Below are positions 7,596-64,000 of a stretch of DNA of 64,000 bases, piece after piece. The translations under genes were made by a program, and so were the position numbers. Below the pieces are notes generated by a model that was not told the DNA's origin, made no database searches, and was given only the letters and a program-made list of their open reading frames with translations. Numbering within the stretch: the stretch's first letter is position 1; every line of letters starts with the position of its first letter. This DNA comes from Schmidtea polychroa (Eukaryota), in NCBI GenBank assembly GCA_044892525.1, contig CM097885.1, positions 15,996,001-16,060,000 on the forward strand, read 5' to 3'.

Positions 7596-10500
7596 AATAA
7601 TTTAACATTATACCATTGGTGCATCTAATGCTTTACCGATGTAGAGGAACCACATGCCAATAGTCATACTGATTGCGAAAAATCCAGTCAAATCACCTTC
7701 ATTGCCCTCTTAAACATTACACAAATGCACTCAGTCTTGGACACGTTTCTCGCTATCCCTTCTGAGTAAGCATCCGTTTTGTAGAGCTCCTTTCATTCAT
7801 GTCATCTGATATGTCAGTGTAGGATCTTGTCTGTGTACAAGTTTCCACACCTTCAAATTGAGGATCTAGAAAGGATAAAATCAAATTCCCTCAACTCGTC
7901 ATTAATTCATATTCATACACAAGGTAACACCATAGGTAATACTTAGCTAAATATTTTATGCGAATGATTCTTCCTTTCATAATATTGACGTTTGTAGGCT
8001 ACGGAATAAGTGATATGCAATTATATTTGTATCATTGTTGATAAAACTTGTGGCCCCCATTCCCTCCATTTACCATGTCAGTTACTGTCAAATACTTTAT
8101 TCTGCAATGGCATAAAATCCTTCATTCATTAAACAAATATGGAAGACTAAATAAAATAAGCGTTTCCAAAGCATTTATCACACTGGGCATGGATATAGAT
8201 GAATGCTACTGACACCCTGTGATCTATTCCATCAACTTTTACACATTCGCGATTGTAGGAAGAACTCTTGATAGAAACCCCTAATATGTCACGTCACAAT
8301 GTATCAATGCGTTCGATGACACAACAAAGAACAATGAAAGATGACCACGGCTAATACATACACCCTCCTATTGGATAGAATCAATTAAAATTTCGTGTCA
8401 ATTAGGCATTGCATTGATCACAGATTTCATAAAATTATAGAAAAATTCGTTACAATTTAATTTTTATTGTGTTAATCTAATCCAATTTATCAGTATTGCT
8501 TGGTGCATTTGATATTTTATCATTGCACCTTTGTCACAATAAAATGTGAAAATGTCAATATGGGGCTCACAGGAACCTTGTACACATTAGAAAATGCCTG
8601 ACAAATATTTGTAACCATGACGAGATCATTAGATCAATATATTAGCATTTTTTGAAAATTATTTATTTTTATATTTTGATATAATTTTAATTTGTATTTG
8701 CCGTTAAAAATGTTAAAATTTTAGATTTTGTTATAAAATTGTAATTTAAATAATTTTCTAATATTTAACATAAATGATATTAATAATATTTTGATTTGCG
8801 CTAAAAGCTAAAACACAATATTTATAAAATGTTTGTTTATCTACATCAAAATACACATTATAAATATTGAAATTGTCAACGTCAGAGGAAATAATAAATA
8901 TAATAAGTATGATTTCTGAATGTTGTAAAATGTTGAAATAAATTTATAATTTTGTTATTTTTAGATAAAATGTTTGCAAGCGTATGGGAAATGATGAAGA
9001 GAAAAGAATTTGAATTTGATAATGAAATCAGCAATGAATTGATATGCAGAATTTGCAAATGTTTAATGATAAAAGCTTGCCATGCTCCTTGCGGTTGTCG
9101 CTTTTGTTCTGATTGCATTGAGCAATATTTGGATGGAAAAGATAAATTCTGTCCAGGAGCAGCAAAACATTGTGGAAAGAAAATGATAAATTTCAATAAA
9201 GATGTTTCTGAAGATCATGCAGCCAATTTAAGGATTTCAGAAGTGATAGTGAGATGTCCAATGCAAAATTGTCAATTCAAAGATGAATTAGAAGTGATGG
9301 AGAGCCACATGAGAACATGCAACAAGCAACCAATAAAATGTTTATTCAATAGAATCGGATGCGAAATGAATGAGGTGGTAAAGGATGAAACGAAAGTCCA
9401 TCTCAATGAGAACACTGAAGGCCATAGCAAATTATTGATTGATCAGATCAGTAATTTATGCAATGAAATGCAAGCAATGAGACACGAGAATGTGATATTG
9501 CGCAATGAAATTATCAATATCAATGTAAAATTGTATTTGTAATTAATTTTATTGATATTTGTGATTGTAGGTGAAACTGGGCAATATGGAAAGGAAAGAA
9601 GCGGAGAACAGAGGAGAAATAGAAGAATTGAATGAGGAAATGGTGGCATTGAAGAATGAGAATCACTCATTGAGAATGGAGATGGAGACAAATATTGGAT
9701 CAATCAAAAAAGTTTGATTATTTATTTGATTTGATATTGATATGTTATTGAGGCAAAGCAACTCAGACAGCAAATTGAGGCGATTGAATCAAAATATCAA
9801 TAGCAAATTGATGATATGAAAGATAAATGCGAGCAGCGACTGCAACAGGGGAATGAAAAGGTGATTTATTGATTTATTGAAATATTTGAATTTGAGATTC
9901 AGTTGCAGCTTGAAATGGCGAAATGCGCCAATGAAAAACGTCAGATTGAATCAAAATGTCAACAGCAAATTGATGAGATGAAAGAGAAATGCGAGCAGCG
10001 ACTACAACAGGAGAATAAAAAGGTAATTTATTGATTTATTGAAATATTTGAATTTGAGATTCAGTTGCAGCTTGAAATGGCGAAATGCGCCAATGAAATT
10101 CGGCAGAATGAAACAAAATTAGCAAATGAAAAATATATAAATTATGGATTTTTTGAATGGCAAATCGATAAATTTTCACAACAAAAGAGAAATGAATATA
10201 TTTACAGCGAGGAATTTTATTCCGGGCCAGTCGGTTACAAAATGTGCTTGAGGGTGAGCATTGAGGGTGATTTGGTTTGGCCTGGTTTCTGTTTGATGCG
10301 TGGGGCAAATGATGAGCAATTGGATTGGCCGTTCAATCAATCCGTGACAATCGATGTGATGGATCCAACAAATGGCAACATTTATATGAGCAAGTCAAGG
10401 AAATATTCAGATTTGTCCCGTGATGCCGGATGGGGGGAACCTTCAGATGACAGAAATGATCTAATTGGCATTTATTATTCTATTGGTGATGGCAGCTCAA

Positions 10501-11110
10501 TCTATCAATTAGCAGCCAAAAGTGATAAATTGCTGCTCAGGTGCAGAATTAAAAAATTCTTACAAATTTAAAAAAACATTTCAATAAAGAATTTATTTTG
10601 GGTTTTGATTTGTTTTATTGTTTGTCTTTTTTTATTATATTTATTATATGAGATTATTATTGTGGTAATTATTGCCATTCTCGCCTTCCATCCGATATCA
10701 TCATCACGTGGCGGAGCGCGCACAGCAAATGCCAATTGCAATATCAACATCAATTATATAATTAAATAAAAGCAATTTAATTAAATCAAAAACATTTAAT
10801 ATAAATTAATTTGAATGATTATTATAATTAAATTAATAATTAATTTGAAAGAAATTAAATTAAAATTCACCCGAATATAAGCGCTGACAAATCGCCTCAA
10901 CAAATCAAACGCTCCTATGACGAGTGGAACTGACGAAAAAACCGCCGCTGATGTTATATGAGTTTTGGATAAATTATTGCTGTACTGAATGGCAGTAAAA
11001 TGCACCTAAATGCAATACTAACACTGCGTTATATCAAATTGATAAATGCCTTGAAGTTTCGCCAGCTATTTTTGAGGCATTTAAACGAAAATCCGCAACA
11101 ACAATACTGA
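7596..11110. repeat. Segmental duplication block B, copy 1 (TRAF unit; matches 28587-32125 and in part 48851-51260)
   Basis: Colinear similarity across upstream pseudo-exons, the TRAF gene and downstream sequence. Confidence 0.9.
8970..10571 (+). CDS. TRAF-like protein copy 1 (RING, TRAF zinc fingers, coiled coil, MATH); spliced; one internal exon dead
   Basis: CRIC-x11-CGCRFCSDC RING; CPMQNC...H...C zinc finger; MATH motifs FEWQIDKF, FYSGPVGYKMCLRV, LDWPFNQSVTI, LLLRCRI. Phase-0 GT-AG introns. In-frame TAG at 9801-9803 in an exon whose acceptor AG is also lost. Confidence 0.85.
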
Positions 11111-28586: not shown

Positions 28587-31500
28587 AATAATTTAACATT
28601 ATGCCATTGCCGCATCTAATGCTTTACTGATCCATCTCAGCCATGTAGAGGAGCCATTGAAAGCTTGGTCACACCGCGTGCCAATACTCATGCTCATTGC
28701 GGAAAATCCAGTCAAATCGCCTTCATTGCCCTCATAAACATTACACAAATGCACTCAGTCTGGGACACATTTCTCGCTATCCGTTCTGATTAAGCTTCCG
28801 TTTTGTACAGCTCCTTTCATGCATGCCATCCGATATGTCAGTGTAGGATCTTGTCTGTGTACAAGTTTCCACACCTTCAAATTGAGGATCTAGAAAGGAT
28901 AAAATCAAATTCCCTCAACTCATCATTAATTCATTTTCATACACAAGGTAACACCATAAGTAATATTTAGCTAAATATTCTATGCGAATGATTCTACCTT
29001 TCCTAATATTGACGTTTGTAGGCTACGGAATAAGTGATATGCAATTATATTTGTGTCATTGTTGATATAACCTGTAGCCCCCCATTCCCTCCATTTACCA
29101 TGTCAGTTAGTGTCAAATACTTTATTCTTTCATGGCATAAAATCCTTCATTCTATAAACAAATATTGAAGACTAAAATAAATAAGCGTTTCCAATGCTAC
29201 TGACGCCCTGTGATCTATTCCATCAACTTTTACACATTCCCTATTGTAGGAAGAACACTTGATAGAAACCCCTAATAAGTCACGTCACAATGTATCAATG
29301 CGTTCGATGACACAACAAAGAACAATGAAAGACCACGACTACTGTGGATTGGCATCAGAATGGTCCTGGCAATTGCTTTGGTGTCCATTAATTGGATTAT
29401 TTTAAAAAAATAAAAAACAAATATCTGATTTGTTGCTGAATCTGCTGTGACCGAATTCTGTGCCATTATTATGTACATCTATCAATACATACACCCTCCC
29501 GCACATCCACTAGCACATGCACCATCACATTCACTAGCACATGCACCATCACATCCACAATCACATGCACTAGGACAGTGAACTACAATACGATTCGATA
29601 GAATCAATTAAAATTGTCAATTAGGCCCTGCATTGATCACAGAATTCATAAATTACACAAAAATTCGTAACAATTTAATTTTTATTGTGTTAAATCTAAT
29701 CAATATCAGATCAATATGTGGCTCACAGGAACCTTGTACACATGAGAAAATGTTAGACAAATATTTGTAACCATAACGAGATCATTAGATCAATATTAAC
29801 ATTTTATGAAAAATATTTATTTTTATATTTTGATATATTTTTAATTTGTATTTGCCGTTAAAAATGTTAAATTTTTACATTTCGTTATAAAATTATAATT
29901 TAAATAATTTTGTAATATTTAAAATAAATGAGAAAAAAATTAGCATTAATAATATTTCGAATTGCTCTGAAGGCTAAAAAACAATATTTATAAAATGTTT
30001 GTTTATCTACATCAAAATACAAATTATAAATATTGAAATTGTCAACGTCAGAGGAAATAATTAATATAATAAGTATGATTTATGAATGTTGTAAAATGTT
30101 GAAATATTTTGATAATTTTGTTAATTTTAGATAAAATGTTTGCAAGCGTATGGGAAATGATGAAGAGGAATAAATTTGAATTTGATAATGAAGTCAGCAG
30201 TGAATTGATATGCAGAATTTGCAAATGTTTAATGATAAAAGCTTGCCATGCTCCTTGCGGTTGTCGCTTTTGTTCTGATTGCATTGAGCAATATTTGGAT
30301 GGAAAAGATAAATTCTGTCCAGGAGCATCAAAACATTGTGGAAAGAAAATGATCAATTTCAAAAAAGATGTTTCTGAAGATCACGCAGCCAATTTAAGGA
30401 TTTCAGAAGTGATAGTGAGATGTCCAATGCAAAATTGTCAATTCAAAGATGAATTAGAGGTGATGGAGAGCCACATGAGAACATGCAACAAGCAACCAAT
30501 GAAATGTCCATTCAATAGAATCGGATGCGAAATGAATGAGGTGGTAAAGGATGAAATGAAAGTCCATCTCAATGAGAACACTGAAGGCCATAGCAAATTA
30601 TTGATCGATCAGATCAGTAATCTATGCAATGAGATGCAAGCAATGAGACACGAGAATGTGACATTGCGTAATGAAATTATCAATATTAATGTAACATTTT
30701 ATTTGTAATTAATTTTATTGATATTTGTGATTGTAGGTGAAACTGGGCAATCTTGAAAGGAAAGAGGCGGAGAACAGAGGAGAAATAGAAGAATTAAATG
30801 AGGAAATGGTGGCATTGAAGAATGAGAATCGCTCATTGAGAATGGAGATGGAGACAAATATTGGATCAATCAATCAAGTTTGATTATTGATTTGATTTAC
30901 TATTGATTTTGTTATTGATGCAAAGCAGGTCAGACAGCAAATTGAAATGAATGAATCAAAATGTCAGCAGCAAATTGATGAGATGAAAGAGAAATGCGAG
31001 CAGCGGCTGCAACAGGGGAATGAAAAGGTGATTTATTGATTTATTAACGTGTTTGAATTTGAGATTCAGCTGCAGCTTGAAATGGCAAAATGCGCCAATG
31101 AAATTCGCCAGATTGAAACAAAATTAGCAAATGAAAAATATATAAATTATGGATTTTTTGAATGGCAAATCTATAAATTTTCACAACAAAAGAGATATGA
31201 AAAAATTTACAGCGAGGCATTTTATTCCGGGCCAATCGGTTACAAAATGTGCTTGAGGGTGAGCATTAGGGGTGATTATGTTTATGCTGGTTTCTGTTTG
31301 ATGCGTGGGGCAAATGATGAGCAATTGGATTGGCCGTTCAATCAATCCGTGACAATCGATGTGATCGATCCAGCAAATGGCAGCATTTATATGAGCAAGT
31401 CAATGAAATATTCAGATCGCCCTGATGCAGCCGGATGGGGGAAACCGTCACAAGACAGAAATAATTCAATTGGCTTTTATTATAATTATCCTGATACCAG

Positions 31501-32125
31501 CTCAATCTATCAATTAGCAGCCAAAAGTGATAAATTGCTGCTCAGGTGCAGAATTGAAAAATTATGACAAATTTAAAAAAACATTTCAATAAAGAATTTA
31601 TTTTGGGTTTTGATTTGTTTTATTGTTTGCATTTTTTATTATATTTTTATTATATTTATTATATGAGATAATTATTGTGGTAATTATTGTCATTCTCGCC
31701 TTCCATCCGATATCATCATCACGTGGCGGAGCGCTCACAGCAAATGCCAATTGCAATATCAACATCAATTATATAATTAAATAAAAGCAATTTAATTAAA
31801 TCAAAAACATTTAATATAAATTAATTTGAATAATTATTATAATTAAATTAATAATTAATTTGAAAGAAATGAAATTAAAATTCACCCGAATATAAGCGCT
31901 GACAAATCGCCTCAACAAATCAAACGCTCCTATGACGAGTGGAACTGACGAGAAAACCGCCGCTGATGTTATATGAGTTGTGGATAAATTATTGCTGTAC
32001 TGAATGGCAGTAAAATGCAGCTAATTGCAATACTAACACCGCGTTATATCAAATTGATAAATGCCTTAACATTTCGCCAGCTATTTGTGAGGCATTTAAA
32101 CGGAAATCAGCAACAACAATACTGA
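28587..32125. repeat. Segmental duplication block B, copy 2
   Basis: Colinear with 7596-11110. Confidence 0.9.
30136..31567 (+). CDS. TRAF-like protein copy 2, apparently intact (4 exons)
   Basis: RING, zinc finger, coiled coil and MATH. Three phase-0 GT-AG introns (GTAACA...TGTAG, GTTTGA...AGCAG, GTGATT...TTCAG). All exons are open when joined. Confidence 0.9.
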
Positions 32126-36245: not shown

Positions 36246-37851
36246 CATTTATTTTTTTTCAAGGTCATTTATTTTTTCAAGGTCATTTATTTTTTCAAGG
36301 TCATTAATTTTTTTCAAGGTCATTTATTTTTTCAAGGTCATTTATTTTTTCAAGGTCATTTATTTTTTCAAGGTCATATTTTAAAATTTAAATGTACAGA
36401 GTTCCCGACAACGATAATTATTCAACGATAGCTCATTTTAAAGCCCAATGCAAGACCTTTCGATTGATTCATAGAAGGTATCATCATCATTATTATTGAC
36501 AAAGTTATTAACAATTGATGACCACCATCTTTTCAACGTTAAATTATTATTATTATTCAAAATATTATTAATTGGCCGGGCGGTGACATACTTTTTCTCA
36601 TCCCAAAAATTAATGTTCCCACCAACGGATTTTATTAGACGATACCTCATGTTAAAGCCCAATGCAAGACCTTTCGAATGAGCTAATGAAGGTATCATCA
36701 TCATTATTATTGACAAAGTTATTAACATTTTACCAAAAATCATTTTCAAGGTCATATAATTATTAAGTGGTCTGGCGGGCCCCTACTCTTTTTCATCCCA
36801 AAAATTAATGTTCCCATTATCCGAATTTATTGGACGATACCTCATCTTAAAGCTCAGTCCAAGACCTTTCGAATGAGTCATAGAAGGTATCATCATCATT
36901 AATATTAACAAAGAGAATGACTCACCCAATGACTCACCCAACGATGTCTAATATTTTTAGAACGATGACTCATCAAGGTCATTCCCAAGGTCATATGACT
37001 CATCAAGGTCAAGGTCATTTTTTTTTAATTTAATTTTTTTGTTTTAATTAAGTAATCTTTTTATTTTCAAGGTCATTTAATTTTCAAGGTCATTTAATTT
37101 TCAAGGTCATTTAATTTTTCAAGGTCATTTAATTTTCAAGGTCATTTACTTTTCAAGGTCATTTACTTTTCAAGGTCATTTATTAAAATAATTATTATTT
37201 TCTNNNNNNNNNNNNNNNNNNNNNNNNNNNNNNNNNNNNNNNNNNNNNNNNNNNNNNNNNNNNNNNNNNNNNNNNNNNNNNNNNNNNNNNNNNNNNNNNN
37301 NNNNNNNNNNNNNNNNNNNNNNNNNNNNNNNNNNNNNNNNNNNATCTATCCGACAAGATATTCTGTCTCCCTAAGGGTATTGCTCACAAGGGCACTACTC
37401 ACATGGGTAATTGTCACAAGGGTACTACTCACATTCAACATGTCGTAAATTATTTTCAAATACAAGTTCAAAGTATTATTATTTATTTTAACACGCACGG
37501 GAGTTATTATTATTATTATCATATATAGTCAGAGTTTATCCGACAAGATATTCTGCCCCCCTATGTGTACTGCTTACATAGGTAATGGTTACAAGGGTAC
37601 TTCTCACATTCAACATGTCTCAAAGGGTATAATATAATTATTATTAAATTCCGACCAACTTAAATCAATGAAGGGGTAGAACAAAATATATTACGTTGCG
37701 GTATTTTAAAATTTAAATATATTTTAAAAACGTATTTTGATACTAAAGTTTACTTAATTAACAAAGACATAATTATTGCACATGCTTTGCATAAATATTA
37801 TTATTTTTTAAATTTTCAATATTTTCTTTTAAAGTATTAACACGCGCGGGA

Positions 37852-45604: not shown

Positions 45605-46580
45605 CTTAGAAACTAAAAACTTAGAAAATAATAATTATTTTAATAAATGACCTTGAAAAGTAAATGACCTTGAAAAGTAAATGACCTTGAAAATTAAATG
45701 ACCTTGAAAAATTAAATGACCTTGAAAATTAAATGACCTTGAAAATTAAATGACCTTGAAAATAAAAAGATTACTTAATTAAAACAAAAAAATTAAATTA
45801 AAAAAAAATGACCTTGACCTTGATGAGTCATATGACCTTGGGAATGACCTTGATGAGTCATCGTTCTAAAAATATTAGACATCGTTGGGTGAGTCATTGG
45901 GTGAGTCATTCTCTTTGTTAATATTAATGATGATGATACCTTCTATGACTCATTCGAAAGGTCTTGGACTGAGCTTTAAGATGAGGTATCGTCCAATAAA
46001 TTCGGATAATGGGAACATTAATTTTTGGGATGAAAAAGAGTAGGGGCCCGCCAGACCACTTAATAATTATATGACCTTGAAAATGATTTTTGGTAAAATG
46101 TTAATAACTTTGTCAATAATAATGATGATGATACCTTCATTAGCTCATTCGAAAGGTCTTGCATTGGGCTTTAAAATGAGGTATCGTCTAATAAAATCCG
46201 TTGGTGGGAACATTAATTTTTGGGATGAGAAAAAGTATGTCACCGCCCGGCCAATTAATAATATTTTGAATAATAATAATAATTTAACGTTGAAAAGATG
46301 GTGGTCATCAATTGTTAATAACTTTGTCAATAATAATGATGATGATACCTTCTATGAATCAATCGAAAGGTCTTGCATTGGGCTTTAAAATGAGCTATCG
46401 TTGAATAATTATCGTTGTCGGGAACTCTGTACATTTAAATTTTAAAATATGACCTTGAAAAAATAAATGACCTTGAAAAAATAAATGACCTTGAAAAAAT
46501 AAATGACCTTGAAAAAAATTAATGACCTTGAAAAAATAAATGACCTTGAAAAAATAAATGACCTTGAAAAAAAATAAATG

Positions 46581-46611
<31 letters not shown>

Positions 46612-47140
46612 AAATAATATTTTGAAAAATAAATGACCTTGAAAAATGGTCTCGGTAAAACTTTAATAACTTTGCCGATGTTAATGATGATGATACATTC
46701 TATGGCTCAATTGAAAGGTCTTAGACTACGCTTCAAAATAAGCTATCGATTAATAAATTCGGATAATGGGAACATTAATTTTTGGGATGAGAAAAAGTAT
46801 GTCCCCGCCCGGCCAATTAATAATATTTTGAATAATAATAATAATTTAACGTTGAAAAGATGGTGGTCATCAATTGTTAATAACTTTGTCAATATTAATG
46901 ATGATGATACCTTCTATGGATCAATCGAAAGGTCTTGGACTGAGCTTTAAGATGAGGTATCGTCCAATAAAATCCGTTGGTGGGAACATTAATTTTTGGG
47001 ATGAAAAAAAGTGTGTCCCCTCCAGGCCAATTAATTAAAACAAAAAATTAAAAAAAAAAATTTTTTTTTTTCCCCGGGGGGGGGAGGGGGTATATGTGGT
47101 CTGGAGGGGACCTGGTCTGGAGGGGACACATCCTACTACT
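42737..47140 (-). repeat. Right inverted arm (TIR), about 4.4 kb
   Basis: Reverse complement of the left arm plus an extra block of about 470 bp at about 46636-47105. Confidence 0.9.
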
Positions 47141-48850: not shown

Positions 48851-51260
48851 AAATATTTATTTTGATATATTTTTAATTTGTATTTGTCGTTAAAAATGTT
48901 AAAATTTTACATTTCTGTATCAAATTGTAATTTAAATAATTTTGTAATATTTAAAATAAATAAGAAAAAAATTAGCATTAATAATATTTTGAATTGCTCT
49001 AAAAGCTAAAGAACAATATTTATAAAATGTTTGTTTCTCTACTTCAAAATACAAATTATAAATATTGAAATTGTAAACGTCAGAGGAAATAATTAATATA
49101 ATAAGTATGATTATTGAAATGTTGTAAAATGTTGAAATATTTTGATAATTTTGTTAATTTTAGAGTTAATTTTATAGTTTGTTAATTTTATAGTTAAATG
49201 TTGGCAAGCGTATGGGAAATGATGAAGAGGAAAGAATTTGAATTTGATAATGAAATCAGCAGTGAATTGATATGCAGAATTTGCAAATGTTTAATGATAA
49301 AAGCTTGCCATGCTCCTTGCGTTTGTGGCTTTTGTTCTGATTGCATTGAAAATTATTTGGATGGAAAAGATAAATTCTGTCCAGGAGCAGCAAAACATTG
49401 TAGAAAGAAAATGATCAATTTCAATAAAGATGTTTCTGAAGATCATGCAGCTAATTTAAGGATTTCAGAAGTGGTAGTGAGATTCCCAATGCAAAATTGT
49501 CAATTTAAAGATGAATTAGAGGTGATGGAGAGCCACATGAGAACATGCAACAAGCAACCAATAAAATGTTTATTCAATAGAATCGGATGCGAAATGAATG
49601 AGGTGGTAAAGGATGAAATGAAAGTCCATCTCATTGAGAACACTGAAGGCCATAGCAAATTATTGATTGATCAGATCAGTAATTTGTGCAATGAGATGCA
49701 AGCAATGAGAGACGAGAATGTGACATTGTGTAATGAAATTATCAATATCAATGTAAAATTGTATTTGCAATTAATTTTATTGATATTTAGGATTGGAGGT
49801 GAAATTGTGCAATATTGAAAAGAAAGAGACTGAAAACAGAGAAGATATAGAAGAATTGAATGAGGAAATGGTGGCATTGAAGAATGAGAACCGCTCATTG
49901 AGAATGGATATGGAGACAAATATTGGATCAATCAATCAGGTTTGATTATTGATTTGATTTGATATTGATATGTTATTGATGGAAAGCAGGTCAGACAGCA
50001 AATTGAAGTGATTGAATCAAAATGTCAGCAGCAAATTGATGAGATGAAAGAGAAATGCGAGCAGCGGCTGCAACAGGTGAATGAAAAGGTGATTTATTGA
50101 TTTATTGAAATGTTTGAATTTGAGATTCAGTTGCAGCTTGAAATGGCGAAATGTGCCAATGAAATTCGGCGGAATGAAACAAAATGTCAACAGCAAATTG
50201 ATGAGATGAAAGAGAAATACGAGCAGCGGTTGCAACAGGCGAATGAAAAGGTGATTTATTGACATATTTGAATTTGAGATTCAGTTGCAGCTTGAAATGG
50301 CGAAATGTACCTATGAAATTCGGCAGATTGAAACAAAATTAGCAAATGAAAAATATGTAAATTACGGATTTTTTGAATGGGAAATCGATAAATTTTCACA
50401 ACAAAAGAGAAGTAAAAATATTTACAACAAAAGCGTTTTTTTCGGGACTAATCGGTTACAAAATTTGCTTGTGGGTGCTGATTGATGGTAATTGGGGTAT
50501 TGAGGCTGGTTTCTGTTTGGTGCGTGGGGCAAATGATGAGCAATTGGATTGGCCGTTCAATCAATCCGTGACAATCGATGTGATCGATCCAGCAAATGGC
50601 AACATTTATATGAGGAAGTCAATGAAATATTCAGATAGCCCTCTTGATGCAGCTGGATGGAGGAAACCTTCACACGACAGAAATAATTCAATTGGTATTT
50701 ATTATTATCCTGATGCCAGCTCAATCTATAAATTAGCAGCCAAAAGTAATAAATTGCTGCTCAGGAGCAGAATTGAAAAATTATGACAAATTTAAAAAAA
50801 CATTTATATAAAAAATTGATTTATTTTGGGTTTTGATTTGTTTTATTATTTGCCTTTTTATTATAGCAAATTGCCGATTGCAATATCAATAATATTGCAA
50901 AATCAAAAATATTTAATATAAATAATTATTTTAATTAAATTAATAATTAATTTGAAATTAAATTTAAATTCACCCGATTATAAGCGCTGACAAATCGCCT
51001 CAACAAATCAAACGCTCCTATGACGAGTGAAACCGACGAGAAAACCGCCGCTGATGTTATATGAGTTTTGGAGAAATTATTGTTGCATTGAATGGCAATA
51101 AAATGCACTTAAATGCAATACTAAAACTGTTATATCAAATTGATAAATGCCTTAACATTTCACTAGCTATTTCTGAGGCATTTAAACGGAAATCCGCAAC
51201 AGCAATGCTGACAAAATGTTCGAAAATTGCTTTCACATCTGTTTGGGTAGTAATTGTATT
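48851..51260. repeat. Segmental duplication block B, copy 3 (partial)
   Basis: Colinear with about 8660-11110 and 29813-32160. Confidence 0.88.
49198..50786 (+). pseudogene. TRAF-like protein copy 3, frameshifted in the MATH domain
   Basis: Same exon layout. An extra A at about 50428-50432 splits MATH into ORFs 50285-50485 and 50373-50786. Zinc-finger Cys is changed to Phe (RFPMQNC). The frameshift could be a homopolymer sequencing error. Confidence 0.8.
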
Positions 51261-56287: not shown

Positions 56288-56771
56288 NNNNNNNNNNNNN
56301 NNNNNNNNNNNNNNNNNNNNNNNNNNNNNNNNNNNNNNNNNNNNNNNNNNNNNNNNNNNNNNNNNNNNNNNNNNNNNNNNNNNNNNNNNNNNNNNNNNNN
56401 NNNNNNNNNNNNNNNNNNNNNNNNNNNNNNNNNNNNNNNNNNNNNNNNNNNNNNNNNNNNNNNNNNNNNNNNNNNNNNNNNNNNNNNNNNNNNNNNNNNN
56501 NNNNNNNNNNNNNNNNNNNNNNNNNNNNNNNNNNNNNNNNNNNNNNNNNNNNNNNNNNNNNNNNNNNNNNNNNNNNNNNNNNNNNNNNNNNNNNNNNNNN
56601 NNNNNNNNNNNNNNNNNNNNNNNNNNNNNNNNNNNNNNNNNNNNNNNNNNNNNNNNNNNNNNNNNNNNNNNNNNNNNNNNNNNNNNNNNNNNNNNNNNNN
56701 NNNNNNNNNNNNNNNNNNNNNNNNNNNNNNNNNNNNNNNNNNNNNNNNNNNNNNNNNNNNNNNNNNNNNNN

Positions 56772-57630
56772 GGGATTTATTCGGTTTCTTTTTCTATCGC
56801 GTCTGTGTGCGCGGTCTGGTTAGACCGAATATTGTTGGTGTGCGCACACAGACGCGAGCAATGGATTGTTGTTTGGAAGTAGGTTTTGATGTAATTTTTT
56901 ATTGAATTGATTTTTGATGTATTTTAATTAGAAATTCGAGATTTGAATGGATTGTTTTGTGGTTTAAAAAAGGTAAAATTCTGGAAGGGAGGAAACCAGT
57001 TTTGTTTATTGAAATAAGTTTTGGAATCGAAATGTTTGAAGAAGAAGATGTTGATTACAAATTTATTAAAGCTTATGATGTTCCAAACCAAGATCTTATT
57101 TCTTATTTCGATGAAACCCGTGAATTCATTGAAAATGGCAGAAAATTTGGTGGAGTATTGGTTCACTGTCTTGCTGGAAGATCAAGAAGTGGAATTATTT
57201 TGACGGCTTATTTAATGAAACATTTTAAAGTTGGTCCAAACGATGCGATTGAGACAATTAAGGAAAAGTCATTTATATGTCCAAATGATGGATTCATGAA
57301 ACAATTAAAGATATATTTCAACATGAATTGCAGTGATGAAATCAACAAATGCGCAAATACAGTTTCTCAAGCTCAATTTAAGTTATCAGCATCTTCAAAA
57401 GATTTAGTTCAATTCAAATGTAGAAAGTGTCGATTTTTATTATTCGACAATTCAAGTGTTGTTGAGCACAGTAAAATGAAAGCTTCGAAAGCAATAAATG
57501 AAAGCACAATTTGCAATGAGGAAATACTTATCGAAGCTCTTCCTTGGATTGATAGCAGCAATGCAGACGGGGAAATGAAAATGACAGTGTTAAAGAATAA
57601 AATTTTAATGATTTATTTGGATCTTATTCA
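56772..57630 (+). repeat. 5' LTR (visible part; about 894 bp predicted, start in gap near 56737)
   Basis: Ends in ...TTATTCA directly before the PBS; AATAAA at 57596-57601; repeated at 61186-61242 plus 62385-63131. Confidence 0.85.
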
Positions 57631-60600
57631 TGGTAGCAGAGCGTGGTTCCGGCTAGCCAGCCGGAACAAGGTAATAGATGATTATATAATGTATTTTTTG
57701 TATTTACGTGATTATTTTGTGAATTATTTTATGAATTATAATATGTGTTATATTTTTATTGTTGAAACATTTCCCCTAGGGCCTGCCCTCCCTAACCCCA
57801 TTAGAGGTGGATTGGCGCGGGTATTTGTCAAAATAATAACAGGGAAGACAATTACTCTCGAAGTTGAATCTAGTGACACGATAGAAAATGTTAATGCGAA
57901 AATACAAGATAAAGAGGGTAGTCCACCTGACCAGCAACGATTAATTTGCGCGGGAAAACCATTAGAAGATGAGCGAACATTATCTGATTATAATATTCAA
58001 AAGGAGTCTACTTTGCGTTTAGTTTTGCGATTGAGGGGTGGAATGCAAATATTCGTGAAGACACTGACAGGAAAAACAATAACTTTGGAAGTAGAATCAA
58101 GTGATACTATTGAGAATGTAAAGGCTAAAATTCAAGAAAAAGAAGGGATACCCCCAGGGCGACAAAGACTTAATTTTGCCGGGAAAGTATTAAAAGATGG
58201 CCTAACGTTGTTAGATTATAACGTTAGGAAAGAAGCCACGGTACATCTGGTTTTGGGGCTGGCAGGGGGAAGTCCAGTATCAGATGCGGAGTTCGAGGCG
58301 GGGTACAAGAGACGAACCGGGTGGAAGATTTCGTTAGGGCGTCTACGTAACCGGGCCTTAGGAGATGGATCGGACCCTGGGGAAGATCAAAGGAGAATGG
58401 AAGCTTACGAAGATATGTATGAGGAAGTCATAAACGAATTGGAGGACCTGAGGAATAATGCTCGGGAGTTAGGGCGGGAGAAAGAAGAAAAGGAAATTGA
58501 GGCAGATCTGAAACGGTTAGAAGCGGATTTCAGCAGAATCGGCGATCTGGTCCTCACGCAGAAGGAAGAGAGTTTTAGAGTAGAGTCGCGGAAGGGCACA
58601 GAAAAATCATTTAGGAGCGAAGAGCCCAATGAGAAACAGAAGTGCATAATGGGTTTGAAACCCTTGCAGCTGCCGATCTTTAATGGAAAGGTAATAGAAT
58701 ATCCTGGATGGAGGGCAATTGTGAGAGCCTGCATCGAGGACACGGATGAGCCGAGTGAAAGAAAGTACTTGTACCTGAGACAGTACTTGGAAGGGAAGCC
58801 GCTGCAATTAATTGCCTATATTGGATATGGCTCGCAGGCTTTCGAGGCGGCGATAAAATTACTTGATGAAAGGTATGGGGGACCAGAAAGATCCTATTCC
58901 ATGATGCTGGATGCGGTGCAGAGGTTCTTCCCAGTGAGGCTCAACGTCTTGGAGGACCTAGAGCGGTTTGAAGAGCTGCTAGGAAACCTCATCCTGAATT
59001 TCAAGGATCAGAAGAGGGAAGGCGAGTTAAACAACGGGATGTTGTATCACCAACTGCTGAAGAAGCTGCCAGAGACCATGCTGATTCAGTGGTCACGCCA
59101 TTGTGATTCGGGGAGAGAGGGAAATGTGCAAACGCTAGCCGAGTGGATCAAAACGGAAGCTAATAGGCATCGGCAAGCAATGAGCATTCTGTTTGGAGAA
59201 GGGCGGGCAAAAGGTAGAACTGTCGCCCCAACAACTAACTTCGGAAATGCGAATAGGGGCACGAAGTTAACGGATAGTAGGCGCAAGATAGAGGTTAGCA
59301 GTGCTCGAAAAAAGGAACCAATTTGTGTGAAATGTGGTTCAGAACATTATTTAAATCAATGCTCAGAGTTCCTAAAGCTGACTGTTAAGGAACGAAATGA
59401 GTTTGTGACCAAGAAGCGGCTTTGTTACAATTGTCTTACAACAGCTCACATGGTTAGAGAATGCGAAAAACCGAGCTTTTGTAAGGACAGAGATTGTACT
59501 CGAAAGCATCACAATTTGCTCCATGGCTCAGAGAACAAAGTTGATGGAGATCAAGAGCCGAGCAATGAGAACACATCAATGATGACGGTTCAAGATACAC
59601 AGAGGAAGAAGATGTATGTTCCTTTACGAACGATTACAGCAAAGTTGATTAATAAAGGAAAGGCGGTCAAGATCAACGCATTGCTAGACGACGCTAGCAA
59701 TGTTAGCTATATTAGCGATTGGGCGGCGCAAGAACTGGGGTTGGGAGGACAGTGGCAAAGCACTCCAGTTGGCGTGATTGGTGGACAATCACAAATGTTG
59801 GAAACGAAGCCCGTGACGCTATTATTGGCAAGCAACAATAACAATTTAAAGGTAAATTTGAACGTCCTGGTGGTAAAAAAGGTCACTGGAGACCTGGGAA
59901 TGTGTAACTGGAGGAAGTTATCGGCGAAATGGAAGCATCTGCGATATATAAACTTCCCGGTTATGAATACAAGGACGCAGATTGATGTATTGATTGGTTC
60001 TGATTACCCATATCTACATCGATCTATTTGCGAAGTAACAGGAGCAAAGCATGAACCAATTGCAAGGTTGACGCCCCTCGGATGGACATGTCTTGGTAGG
60101 ATTGCAAGAAATCAAGCTCCAAGATGTTCGCATTTGGCTCAGAGTTATTTTGCGGTAACGGAAATGTTAAACGACGGAGAAATGATTATTCATGATGTAG
60201 ATAATTCTGAAGAAATGGATTATATTAAAGAATGGGATGAAAACGATGAAACACATGAAAACAAAAAGGCTAGCGAAGATGGAGATAGGGAAAGCAATGA
60301 ATGTGAGAATTTACAATCTAGCGATATTATAAATCAAGATGGAATAGAGCAAAATCGAGTCAATGAGAACGAGAATAATTATTCTGAATTTGTAAAAAGT
60401 AATACTGAACTATTAGGCAAAGCTTTTGATAAAGGAGACCAAGTTACAGCAGATGAGTTAGAAAATATTGTCAAAAGTCACAATCAAGAAGAAAATTTTG
60501 AAAGTAAATATGATGAAACTGAAGTAGATGTGTCAGACAAGAATGAAAATTATAATAGTCATGTAGGCACAGAGGTTGTCGACATTAATGTTATCGAAAG

Positions 60601-61105
60601 ACCGAATTCTTTGGTAGAAGATAATTTTCAAAACATGGAAGACGTAGTTAATGTTCAAACGGATTCTGCTTCTTCAGAAAATCATTTAGAAACTGATCGA
60701 ATTATGCCAGATTCTGAGAGCAATGACAGTGATCTTAGAGTCGATATTGGTAAAGATCATACATCCGACACAGCTAAAGATTCTGAACAAAATACATTCA
60801 CTCAACCAACGTCTGCTTTAGATGATATCATTGAAGACTATTCACCTGGTTCCCCTTTATTAAATGAGATGCAACAGGGAAAAGTGGGGACTATTGAATT
60901 GGTGAAACATGCAGGAAGGATAATGGAGATATTGCAGCGAAACAGAATGAAAAGTGGCAGGGGCTTGGTCGAGTATGGCGATGGTGGGAGGAGAATCCAC
61001 CATGATGTATCCAGAAAAGTGCGTGGTGCGGTGGCCTTTACCATAGCAAGATGGGTGTGTGAGGGGTATTGGAGAGAGGCAAAAGGAAAGGTTCCCCTGA
61101 AGTAA
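56957..61105 (+). CDS. 1382-aa ORF: DUSP12-like phosphatase - ubiquitin - ubiquitin - Bel/Pao Gag - aspartic protease - acidic tail
   Basis: Uninterrupted frame in the ORF track; domains recognised by motif (see sub-features). The start codon is non-ATG (GTG), so the true initiation site is uncertain. Confidence 0.8.
57020..57577 (+). other. DUSP12: DUSP12/YVH1-like dual-specificity phosphatase domain plus partial C-terminal zinc-binding domain, inside the 5' LTR
   Basis: AYD general acid; [10 protein letters not shown] (57161-57190); [10 protein letters not shown]; [11 protein letters not shown]...H...C...IEALPW. Truncated before the final CPKC/CSCG ligands. Confidence 0.8.
57631..57649 (+). 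promoter_or_regulatory. Primer-binding site complementary to initiator tRNA-Met
   Basis: TGGTAGCAGAGCGTGGTTC immediately after the LTR-terminal CA; matches the known TGGTAGCAGAG iMet-type PBS. Confidence 0.85.
57815..58270 (+). other. Head-to-tail di-ubiquitin (Ub1 57815-58042, Ub2 58043-58270)
   Basis: Two 76-aa units: [25 protein letters not shown]...LRLRGG and [18 protein letters not shown]...LGLAGG; preceded by IRGG. Confidence 0.95.
58271..60120 (+). other. Bel/Pao Gag and aspartic protease domains
   Basis: [14 protein letters not shown]...[11 protein letters not shown]; knuckles CVKC..H....C, CYNC....H....C and C....C...H....H (59324-59523); [12 protein letters not shown] (Asp at 59687); IDVLIGSDY; [11 protein letters not shown]. 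Confidence 0.9.
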
Positions 61106-61133
61106 TTGGGTGGTTGATCCGCTAGAAGGGATC

Positions 61134-61147
61134 AAGGAGGGGGGAAA
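61134..61147 (+). promoter_or_regulatory. Polypurine tract
   Basis: AAGGAGGGGGGAAA immediately before the LTR-initial TG at 61148. Confidence 0.85.
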
Positions 61148-61242
61148 TGTTTCGACCAGTCAGAGGGGGATTGCCTCTGACTGGCATTTATTCGGTTTCT
61201 TTTTCTATCGCGTCTGTGTGCGCGGTCTGGTTAGACCGAATA

Positions 61243-62382
61243 CACCCGTTTCCACATGTTAAAAGTCTTTATAATACATGTTGGTGTGTTCATCTATCGA
61301 TGACTCACCATTTATGAGAATGTTTATTTCATTTTTTCATTCTCAATTCAATTTTATTTATGGTTTTAGAAGTAAGTTTTTTAAATTTAAGTATATTTTA
61401 AGGCTTGAATTTTGATTTCATATAATTATGAGATCATTATTCAAGCTCTTAAATATTACTTGTAATCAGCATTTATAATATATTTATAATATATTGATAA
61501 TTAAATTTCAGGTGCTTTTTTAGGTATTTTATGATATGTTATGAATTTGGAATTATTTCAATAAAATGTAAGTTATATATATTTTTAACTAAAAAGAAAT
61601 AAAATAATCACCAAAAACATTTATTTTTTTAAGAAATAATGGTTCCAATCGATTTTTTGGAGATTCCCAGTAATCTTCCAAAATCTTTATAATTTTCTCC
61701 ATTTTCATATGGATGGATGAGACGGATTTTGTCATTTTCTGAAATTCTTTGAAAATATTATTTTTTTTTTAGTTATTAAAATTTACGATTTTCGAATTTT
61801 TTTCTTCAATTCCAAAAATGTCGATGGAACTTGTTGAATATCTTCACACAAAGGCGTTTGACTAGAAATATCTGATATGCTGTAAAATATTTTAATTATT
61901 TGTAATTAAATAAAAAAATTCTTACATTGTCAGATCTTCACCTTCGCAAAATGGAAATGTCTCCAAAGAAATATCTGAAAATCTAAAGAAATATTAACTT
62001 CAAAAATATTTTATAAATAGATCTTACGATGTTTTGTCGTCCATTTCTCAAAAACTCAAAGTTGAGTTGTCAGATTCAAAATCCAAATTTTTTTCAGCCA
62101 TGAATTTTAATAATTTTAAATTAATGATATGTTAACAGTATGTTAATGACTCTCTACTTTCGGAACAAAAAAAGCTATATTAAATTTGCGTGTATTTTAT
62201 ATTATGTGTCCTGTGTTTGTATGTAAAATTATTTTTCTGTCACTTTCTCAATTCCTATAATAAAACTTTCTACATTCGGAACATTAAATTTTTGCACACA
62301 GGTAAGTTTGTGTGTTGCTATAATATAATTTTATCGATTTTTTTTTTAGATTATAGAAACTCTTATATTGTGGAAACGGGTG
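61243..62382 (-). mobile_element. Non-autonomous Tc1/mariner-type element
   Basis: 14-bp TIR CACCCGTTTCCACA / TGTGGAAACGGGTG; TA duplication (61241-61242 and 62383-62384); HTH-like remnant ISENDKIRLIHPYENGENYKDFGRLLGISKKSIGTII on the minus strand at about 61635-61750. Confidence 0.85.
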
Positions 62383-62509
62383 TATTGTTGGTGTGCGCAC
62401 ACAGACGCGAGCAATGGATTGTTGTTTGGAAGTAGGTTTTGATGTAATTTTTTATTGAATTGATTTTTGATGTATTTTAATTAGAAATTCGAGATTTGAA
62501 TGGATTGTT

Positions 62510-63131
62510 TTGTGGTTTAAAAAAGGTAAAATTCTGGAAGGGAGGAAACCAGTTTTGTTTATTGAAATAAGTTTTGGAATCGAAATGTTTGAAGAAGAAG
62601 ATGTTGATTACAAATTTATTAAAGCTTATGATGTTCCAAACCAAGATCTTATTTCTTATTTCGATGAAACCCGTGAATTCATTGAAAATGGCAGAAAATT
62701 TGGTGGAGTATTGGTTCACTGTCTTGCTGGAAGATCAAGAAGTGGAACTATTTTGACGGCTTATTTAATGAAACATTTTAAAGTTGGTCCAAACGATGCG
62801 ATTGAGACAATTAAGGAAAAGTCATTTATATGTCCAAATGATGGATTCATGAAACAATTAAAGATATATTTCAACATGAATTGCAGTGATGAAATCAACA
62901 AATGCGCAAATACAGTTTCTCAAGCTCAATTTAAGTTATCAGCATCTTCAAAAGATTTAGTTCAATTCAAATGTAGAAAGTGTCGATTTTTATTATTCGA
63001 CAATTCAAGTGTTGTTGAGCACAGTAAAATGAAAGCTTCGAAAGCAATAAATGAAAGCACAATTTGCAATGAGGAAATACTTATCGAAGCTCTTCCTTGG
63101 ATTGATAGCAGCAATGCAGACGGGGAAATGA
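62510..63131 (+). CDS. DUSP12: Second DUSP12-like copy, inside the 3' LTR (runs into gap)
   Basis: Translation identical to the 5' copy except SGIIL versus SGTIL. Confidence 0.75.
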
Positions 63132-64000
63132 NNNNNNNNNNNNNNNNNNNNNNNNNNNNNNNNNNNNNNNNNNNNNNNNNNNNNNNNNNNNNNNNNNNNN
63201 NNNNNNNNNNNNNNNNNNNNNNNNNNNNNNNNNNNNNNNNNNNNNNNNNNNNNNNNNNNNNNNNNNNNNNNNNNNNNNNNNNNNNNNNNNNNNNNNNNNN
63301 NNNNNNNNNNNNNNNNNNNNNNNNNNNNNNNNNNNNNNNNNNNNNNNNTTATATTTTAAACAATTTAAATATTATTTGGAATATTTTATAAGATACAATA
63401 ATATGAGTTATTTCATTTTATTCATATTTGTTTGTGTGCTAAATTTCATCTTTTTACAAAAACATTTTCTCAATAATAAACTATTGTTTAGATTATATTA
63501 TATGAAAGCGAAACAATTTTTTATTTCTCTTTCATCTGTAACAATAAAGTTAATTTCGACCAAATTATATTAATTATTAATTAAAATTATTTTTTTCAAT
63601 TTATTTAATTTGTTCTTTCCATTTGCTATACTCATGGCCTCGATAATGTAAGTTGATGTGATAAAGCTGTATTTATCTTATTAAATTTGCATTCATTTAA
63701 ACAAACTACCTGATGAGACATAAAATGGACAAAATCATTGTACTAAGTACTAGTCCAGCTTGCTGGAATGCTTTAGGCAATGCCAAAGCTCTAGAGCCAA
63801 CGATGAGATTGAATACAAAGATGCATCCGGTCTGTAACAGAAAGAAAACTCTTCATAAAACCAAAAATAAATGATGCGTAACAAACCCATCTGGAATAAG
63901 TGGCTGTCGGCATTTCAATTTATTTTTATTTCGAATATTAATCTAGTCTAAAAAATAAATTTTTGTAAAGTCTTCATTAATAAAATCCTGCTGATTTATA

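Follow-up and report, generated by a model that had tools for sequence, protein, structure and literature searches.

Why would a retrotransposon carry ubiquitin directly in front of its structural protein? The question arises from a stretch of 64,000 nucleotides of Schmidtea polychroa (assembly GCA_044892525.1, contig CM097885.1, positions 15,996,001 to 16,060,000 of the forward strand; hereafter, the window, numbered from its first letter), in which a Bel/Pao long terminal repeat (LTR) retrotransposon encodes two ubiquitin units, Ub1 and Ub2, in frame with Gag. LTR retrotransposons are thought to process their polyproteins with their own aspartic protease, and accessory domains are rarely fixed in them. 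Comparison with related elements, presented below, suggests that the feature is most likely inherited and functional: because the same layout recurs in six distant relatives and the LxGG tail is always kept, ubiquitin appears to be an inherited processing signal rather than debris. As to its action, we lean, at slightly better than even chances, towards host deubiquitinases cutting after LxGG and thereby freeing Gag from a variable leader peptide.

Ubiquitin units at the N-terminus of Gag

A preliminary inspection of the letters and open reading frames (ORFs), referred to here as the sequence-only reading, had claimed the order Ub1-LRGG-Ub2-LAGG-SPVS-Gag in one frame, with LRGG, K48 and K63 retained in Ub1, and I44N and an LGLAGG tail in Ub2. 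Translation from position 57635, which reads ...IRGG-L-Ub1-Ub2-SPVS...Gag, shows that order to be exact, and the residues named are confirmed by the translation and by comparison with ubiquitin. The presence of ubiquitin units before Gag is far beyond chance. The Pfam ubiquitin model (PF00240) matches two stretches of the window ORF (E 3.8e-53), and residues 2-152 of the 152-residue Ub1-Ub2 segment align with residues 2-152 of a solved linear di-ubiquitin in the PDB (255.9 bits, E 8e-76). When a single unit was used for the search, the top 60 matches were ubiquitin or ubiquitin fusions, including ubiquitin-ribosomal protein fusions, and not NEDD8. The upstream frame of 299 codons, the absence of reverse transcriptase (RT), RNase H and integrase, and the phosphatase fragment in the LTR, all described below, are features beyond those of the sequence-only reading.

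Compared with reference ubiquitin, Ub1 differs at 12 of 76 positions but keeps I44, K48, K63 and the LRLRGG tail, whereas Ub2 differs at 15, including I44N, R72G and R74A, with K48 and K63 kept. On its recognition surface, Ub1 carries L8I and H68R, with I44, R72 and R74 unchanged. The canonical surface (L8, I44, H68, V70) together with Arg72/Arg74 is thus not intact in Ub1, in Ub2 or in the Gag-proximal units of the relatives, and the units are best described as ubiquitin-derived rather than canonical ubiquitin. By contrast, the Leu73-x-Gly75-Gly76 tail is present throughout, with L73, G75 and G76 invariant in all eight units compared, and the layout is that of a fusion signal: a folded ubiquitin just N-terminal to Gag, an intact GG and a following residue other than Pro. 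An AlphaFold2 model of Ub2 with 257 residues of Gag reproduces the beta-grasp order with a predicted local distance difference test (pLDDT) score of 76-90, followed by long helices; residues 73-78 score below 50, for which reason the model depicts the Ub2-Gag junction as flexible and exposed.

A clade of ubiquitin-bearing Bel/Pao elements

A search with the Gag-protease region of the window uncovered P0001, which encodes ubiquitin, Gag, protease, RT, RNase H and integrase; further relatives came from querying 1.84 billion representatives with a profile and from using P0001 itself as a query. The search of Bel/Pao sequences for ubiquitin-Gag fusions, which the sequence-only reading had suggested, yielded five ubiquitin-bearing relatives (P0001/L001, P0015/L002, P0165, P0166 and P0172/L003) and one, P0043/L004, that has only the last ubiquitin residues, ...KLKGG, before Gag. 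RT, RNase H and integrase are encoded by P0001, P0165, P0166 and P0172. In L004, GC-rich sequence of quite different composition (positions 1-285) runs up to the five remaining ubiquitin codons; L004 is probably a chimeric contig or else a truncated copy.

The five ubiquitin-bearing proteins are the five best BLASTP matches of the window Gag-protease region among 232 Bel/Pao proteins, and they are the only ones in this set to which the N-terminal 130 residues of the window Gag can be aligned. In a neighbour-joining tree of 80 Gag-protease sequences, all seven elements form one clade (bootstrap 128/200, 64%), and the clade elements also group together in a tree of 70 sequences without P0165 (133/200). 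The clade is deep, given that Gag-protease identity within it is only 36-52%; with seven elements sharing ubiquitin or its tail at the N-terminus of Gag, the view that the capture is old and has been maintained is supported. No ubiquitin was found outside the clade in 26 further Bel/Pao loci from a metagenome scan. In every member, 12-27 residues separate the end of ubiquitin from the conserved basic motif that opens the Bel/Pao Gag, which places the unit at the native Gag N-terminus.

Additional units are in various states of erosion: P0166 keeps part of one, and no more than RGG-like remnants are left in the window (57803-57811, upstream of Ub1) and in P0001. Because of these remnants and the partial extra unit, the simplest reading is a single old capture of a polyubiquitin transcript. 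Ub2 of the window and the proximal unit of P0166 have R72G in common and are 72% identical, as against 38% for their Gag-protease regions; stronger constraint or a later exchange with host ubiquitin could explain the difference.

Constraint on the units

The six Gag-proximal units all agree at 13 of their 76 positions (10, 13, 17, 27, 43, 47, 50, 52, 59, 66, 73, 75 and 76). Residues of turns and of the core, the pair 27/52 and the tail make up this set, and substitutions at the other core positions stay within I, L, V, M and F. Positions 8, 44, 48, 63, 68, 72 and 74 vary. The units have diverged to as little as 24-30% identity, yet L73, G75 and G76 do not change; Pfam scores range from 43-57 bits in P0015, P0165 and P0172 to about 90 in P0001. 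All eight units are free of stops and frameshifts, although the sample, drawn from predicted long proteins, is biased. For Ub1, Ub2 and the L001 unit, the proportion of nonsynonymous differences (pN) is 0.18-0.23 and that of synonymous differences (pS) 0.80-1.08, and since synonymous sites are saturated, no ratio of the two rates (dN/dS) is given.

Proline after GG blocks deubiquitinases. In the seven elements, the residue in this position is S, M, G, S, S, M and S, never P, and all of these are stabilising under the Arg/N-degron rule. Constraint limited to the fold and LxGG fits a signal cleaved by the host and appears to act on the Gag-proximal unit only, with upstream units such as Ub1 probably representing decaying leftovers of the capture.

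The leader and the start of translation

The first ubiquitin unit of every element has lost Met1 (replaced by A, V, I, I and F), which is kept only in the second units of the two di-ubiquitin elements. In the ubiquitin frame, the leader between the primer-binding site and ubiquitin is free of stops; the remaining two frames contain 7 and 7 stops in the window element, and for L003 the counts are 8 and 3. Upstream of ubiquitin, the frame is open for 299 codons in the window, into the 5' LTR, and for 227 codons in L003. In the window, P0165, P0166 and P0172, the primer-binding site itself translates as G-S-R, and an in-frame ATG precedes it by 59 nt in the window, 56 nt in P0166, 50 nt in L003 and 29 nt in P0165. 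Ubiquitin-less relatives differ in this respect: of 11 that share this primer-binding site, 9 have a Gag frame closed downstream of it, and in the 10 with an ATG in the open stretch, the first ATG lies 21-520 nt downstream of the site, whereas the first ATG of the window element and L003 is upstream. These observations suggest that translation probably starts upstream of ubiquitin, likely in the last part of the LTR. In-frame ATGs are not enriched upstream of ubiquitin (12 of 32 are in frame in the window, and L003 is mixed), and the RNA fold of the leader is not more stable than those of shuffled sequences (z -0.4).

Intron-like GT..AG stretches follow the primer-binding site in two distant members of the clade, the window element (57670-57779, 110 nt) and L003 (520-644, 125 nt). 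Neither length is a multiple of 3, each leaving a remainder of 2, and the ubiquitin frame is open across both stretches. A splicing model was tried and rejected: joining the exons would leave 16 open codons in the window and 49 in L003, without an ATG, for which reason the unspliced reading is taken as the coding one.

Host-gene fragments beside the module

Most of the LTR of the window element consists of a fragment of a dual-specificity phosphatase, which matches the Pfam DSPc model over profile positions 37-131 of 133 (E 8.4e-22) as well as DUSP19, DUSP10, DUSP3 and DUSP12 structures in the PDB. It is 78% identical to residues 43-235 of the 282-residue protein P0233; both ends of the phosphatase gene are therefore gone. 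The fragments in the two LTRs differ at a single residue, and a 17-residue stretch of P0233 is absent from them, which could reflect a skipped small exon or a difference between paralogues.

Similar captures were recognized with Pfam in two relatives. In L001, an HSP90 piece lies between the leader and ubiquitin, in sense orientation and in the ubiquitin frame. The 3' LTR of L003 holds a DEAD/Helicase_C piece, likewise sense and in frame, which starts with an ATG after an AT-rich stretch with TATAAA; the other LTR copy has an unrelated open frame at this place. What the two L003 copies share is limited to the leader and the ~105 nt that end at the primer-binding site (97%), and the difference could stem from mixing of variants by the assembler or from real rapid turnover at one spot. 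DnaJ-like and ULP-like N-terminal pieces, considered for P0165 and P0172, respectively, found no Pfam match at E 0.1 and were dropped.

Proposed role of the module and its alternatives

In the mechanism that we favour, translation would start upstream of ubiquitin, most economically at the in-frame ATG that lies near the end of the LTR, 29-59 nt ahead of the primer-binding site. Reading through RNA-functional sequence would come at a price, in that the nascent protein would begin with a leader peptide that is encoded by this sequence and poorly conserved. Host deubiquitinases would cut after GG, as in polyubiquitin and ubiquitin-ribosomal protein precursors, releasing Gag, or Gag-Pol in the autonomous relatives, with a clean, stabilising N-terminal residue and leaving the leader-ubiquitin moiety as a by-product. 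The sequence-only reading had put forward three uses for ubiquitin: a processing signal, an uncleaved tag and a source of ubiquitin decoys. The processing signal fits the pattern of constraint, but since the frame opens upstream of ubiquitin, its likely purpose would be removal of the leader peptide rather than simply defining the end of Gag. The decoys are without support, because the upstream units erode. The uncleaved tag has been weakened by the invariant GG and is best considered together with other explanations that assign ubiquitin a different role or none.

The changes at R72, R74 and I44 keep in play the idea that the Gag-proximal ubiquitin is a permanent, uncleaved domain with a role in assembly, trafficking or turnover, its altered tail shielding it from deubiquitinases. 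R74 is replaced in five of the six Gag-proximal units (A, Q, L, L and F), R72 is Gly in two (the window and P0166), the I44 patch is altered (N, M, V and F) and the fold is conserved; moreover, ubiquitin fused to a retroviral Gag can substitute for a late domain. Nevertheless, we regard a permanent domain as unlikely: L73, G75 and G76 are invariant across units so diverged, and built-in ubiquitin-like domains, such as those of Rad23 and parkin, are not known to keep the diglycine. An uncleaved unit would also stay joined to an unconserved leader, and the junction is predicted to be flexible. It is more improbable still that ubiquitin is a roleless passenger, perhaps not even translated, with Gag starting internally; template switching onto abundant host mRNAs would then have brought it in, as it would the phosphatase, HSP90 and helicase pieces. 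Host-gene fragments do adjoin the module, upstream units decay, Ub1 and Ub2 have accumulated 12 and 15 changes, and an open frame over 456 nt counts for little by itself. However, one exact junction has been kept throughout a deep clade, substitutions spare the core and the tail, pN is low against saturated synonymous sites, and ubiquitin is constant where the other captured fragments vary between elements. An internal start is also hard to reconcile with the window Gag, which has no Met for about 45 residues after GG.

A quite doubtful alternative is that the module serves to carry the host-gene fragments: fragment, leader and ubiquitin would be passengers cut from Gag, and the pieces themselves would matter, for instance, as dominant-negative interference with stress responses or RNA handling. 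If so, the element could acquire host coding sequence and have it translated without any penalty, and the captured pieces would possibly be turned against the stress or RNA-surveillance pathways of the host. All three Pfam-verified fragments (DSPc in the window, HSP90 in L001 and DEAD/Helicase_C in L003) are in sense orientation and in the ubiquitin frame, the chance of which is about 1/6 per fragment, and long open frames precede ubiquitin in the window and L003. On the other hand, the open frame of P0166 begins only 19 codons before the primer-binding site, which implies that an element can do without host fragments. Both ends of the fragments are missing, pieces captured in LTRs usually lie in U3, outside the 5' end of the mRNA, many of the ATGs that the window element has in its LTR and leader do not share the ubiquitin frame, and the guesses for P0165 and P0172 have no Pfam support. 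The least credible explanation, which we consider hardly tenable, is that a host polyubiquitin gene or pseudogene, or an assembly join, happens to lie beside a retrotransposon. N gaps do flank the locus and the region is repetitive, but 56772-63131 is gap-free, ubiquitin sits between the primer-binding site and Gag within the LTR pair, and independent contigs from five other samples show the same layout.

Several observations weigh against cleavage by host deubiquitinases and release of a leader. The main objection is that the changes at R72, R74 and the I44 patch, which also count for a permanent domain, could make the unit harder for canonical deubiquitinases to recognize. Of the 32 ATGs in the LTR and leader of the window element, 20 are out of frame and interspersed, and in L002 the open stretch upstream of ubiquitin is short and has no ATG. 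Support for the clade is moderate (64-66%). The relatives were detected as long predicted proteins, so that broken copies would be missed; most of them are short metagenome contigs, at least one of which (L004) looks chimeric, and the LTR copies of L003 (1-497 and 6284-7421) differ upstream of their shared part.

Comparison with known systems

Cellular ubiquitin precursors are processed by deubiquitinases. The module resembles polyubiquitin and the ubiquitin-eL40 and ubiquitin-eS31 precursors in its head-to-tail units and N-terminal fusion, and such precursors are its top structural matches. Host ubiquitin genes, however, encode a near-invariant unit with a Met start, whereas the units of the element are diverged, the first lacks Met and is preceded by a leader. 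Another parallel is offered by pestiviruses. In the bovine viral diarrhoea virus (BVDV) strains Osloss, CP1 and CP Rit, host ubiquitin captured by RNA recombination is placed just before a mature protein, and cellular ubiquitin C-terminal hydrolases cut after GG to yield the authentic N-terminus; the captured ubiquitin often comes with other host fragments, such as a piece of S27a, and is sometimes truncated N-terminally (PMC8310069). In the Bel/Pao module, too, captured ubiquitin directly precedes the mature protein and host fragments are found nearby; cleavage is predicted. Unlike the pestivirus insertions, which are sporadic variants with ubiquitin inside the polyprotein and close to the host sequence, the module is a heritable trait of a clade, stands at the head of Gag and has diverged in its surface and Arg72/Arg74 while keeping LxGG.

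Separation of an N-terminal peptide from a functional protein is also achieved by 2A-like ribosome-skipping peptides, which occur near the N-terminus of ORFs of non-LTR retrotransposons and recur across clades (PMC3708506). The likeness is functional only: 2A acts co-translationally at NPG|P, without a host protease, and in non-LTR elements. The 2A motif D(V/I)ExNPGP is not represented in the 1382-residue window ORF, which has no NPG or NPGP. Ordinary Bel/Pao elements (DUF1759, DUF1758, RVT_1, Peptidase_A17, rve, DUF5641) share with the ubiquitin clade the Gag-protease core, the primer-binding site, the polypurine tract and the TG..CA LTR ends, and autonomous members of the clade have the full ordinary domain set; what ordinary elements do not have is ubiquitin, and in most of them the Gag frame opens downstream of the primer-binding site. 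In yeast Ty1, the Gag reading frame begins inside the 5' LTR, but Ty1 belongs to another superfamily and has neither ubiquitin nor removal of a leader by a host protease. In the literature searched, ubiquitin is not described for Bel/Pao elements or for any other LTR retrotransposon, an absence that is not proof.

Thus, a whole sub-lineage of Bel/Pao elements appears to have taken host ubiquitin into permanent service at the head of Gag. The ubiquitin captures that pestiviruses make sporadically would have a heritable counterpart in these retroelements, and the module would be analogous to the 2A peptides at the N-terminus of non-LTR proteins, but with a protease doing the separation. The layout points to a translation start in the LTR, upstream of the primer-binding site, and shows repeated in-frame capture of host fragments beside the ubiquitin module. 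In genome annotation, such loci will be mis-called as polyubiquitin genes or as phosphatase, HSP90 or helicase fusion genes.

Structure of the window element

The features of the element are collected in Table 1. A single open frame (56957-61105) extends over 1382 codons without stops or frameshifts. The direct repeats flanking it are identified as LTRs with a primer-binding site and a polypurine tract because TGGTAGCAGAGC follows the left copy and AAGGAGGGGGGAAA precedes the right one. The LTR pair is about 99.8% identical overall, as determined by separate alignment of the two flanks of a nested element (56772-56831 versus 61183-61242, 98.3%; 56830-57578 versus 62383-63131, 99.87%); the outer LTR ends and the target-site duplication fall within N gaps. 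On the coding strand of other elements, the 12-mer TGGTAGCAGAGC likewise occurs upstream of Gag: L003 has it twice, and 11 further Bel/Pao loci carry it. A search for tRNA genes in the window and 30 loci found none, and no tRNA partner is thus assigned to the primer-binding site. The equivalent of the polypurine tract in L003 is AAAGGGGGGAG, found before TGTTGAG at the matching place.

Table 1. Coordinates of the Bel/Pao element and associated features in the window
Feature	Positions	Strand	Remarks
5' LTR, visible part	56772-57633	+	first ~35 bases in N gap 56288-56771; end ...TTATTCA
Dual-specificity phosphatase fragment in LTR	56990-57571	+	ubiquitin frame; HCxxGxxRS loop intact; second copy 62543-63124
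Primer-binding site TGGTAGCAGAGC	57634-57645	+	abuts 5' LTR end; in-frame reading G-S-R-A
Leader, primer-binding site to Ub1	57634-57814	+	open in ubiquitin frame; GT..AG stretch 57670-57779
Ub1	57815-58042	+	full unit; Ala replaces Met1; tail LRLRGG
Ub2, Gag-proximal	58043-58270	+	ATG first; I44N; tail LGLAGG
Gag	58271-59617	+	N-terminal helical region; DUF1759 core ~58679-59101; two CCHC knuckles 59324-59464
Retropepsin-like protease region	59618-60112	+	motif LLDDAS; colinear with P0001, L002, L003
Acidic C-terminal region and stop	60113-61105	+	330 codons; occupies the place of RT/RNase H/integrase in relatives
Polypurine tract AAGGAGGGGGGAAA	61134-61147	+	read directly
3' LTR	61148-63131	+	begins TGTTTCGACC (TGTTTCG); end inside N gap 63132-63348; nested insertion within
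Nested terminal-inverted-repeat element, 1140 bp	61243-62382	+	TA target duplication; 14-bp inverted ends; absent from 5' LTR

Paired LTRs, the primer-binding site, the polypurine tract and a DUF1759 Gag with CCHC knuckles followed by a retropepsin are all characteristic of Bel/Pao elements. DUF1759, the Bel/Pao Gag model, matches with a Pfam E of 3.1e-8; the window protease itself is below the Pfam threshold, and its relatives match DUF1758/Asp_protease. The Bel/Pao pol order of RT, RNase H (the Peptidase_A17 model) and integrase is missing from the window copy, and no remnants of the three domains were detected anywhere in the 64-kb window. Their place is taken by the acidic region (60113-61102; 22% D+E), which is open in one frame, compared with 21 and 45 stops in the others. 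It has no Pfam match and no similarity among the 232 Bel/Pao proteins, and may be another captured or a novel sequence. The breaks in the window copy amount to the loss of pol beyond the protease, through one internal deletion or replacement, and one nested insertion in one LTR; the copy is young and non-autonomous.

The protease motif of the window (59687-59698) has the form D-D-A-S, which is found in 50 of the collected Bel/Pao proteins, compared with D-D-G-S in 68 and the classic D-S/T-G in 15. The Gly-to-Ala form is not confined to the ubiquitin clade. The nested element of the 3' LTR holds a mir-753-like hairpin (61394-61455), a full-length match to Rfam RF04089 with 81.2 bits (gathering score 62); mir-753 is probably a microRNA family of planarian flatworms.

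The wider window

Positions 1-52000 of the window contain three diverged tandem units about 19-21 kb apart, with 85-100% identity in pieces (for example, 8952-10571, 30109-31567 and 49198-49818). Each has TRAF-like ORFs (RING, zf-TRAF, MATH): in this AT-rich host (~30% GC), a TRAF gene family has expanded locally. Outside the element, short arrays of ~195/214-bp tandem units lie at 45865-47135 and 36343-36913.

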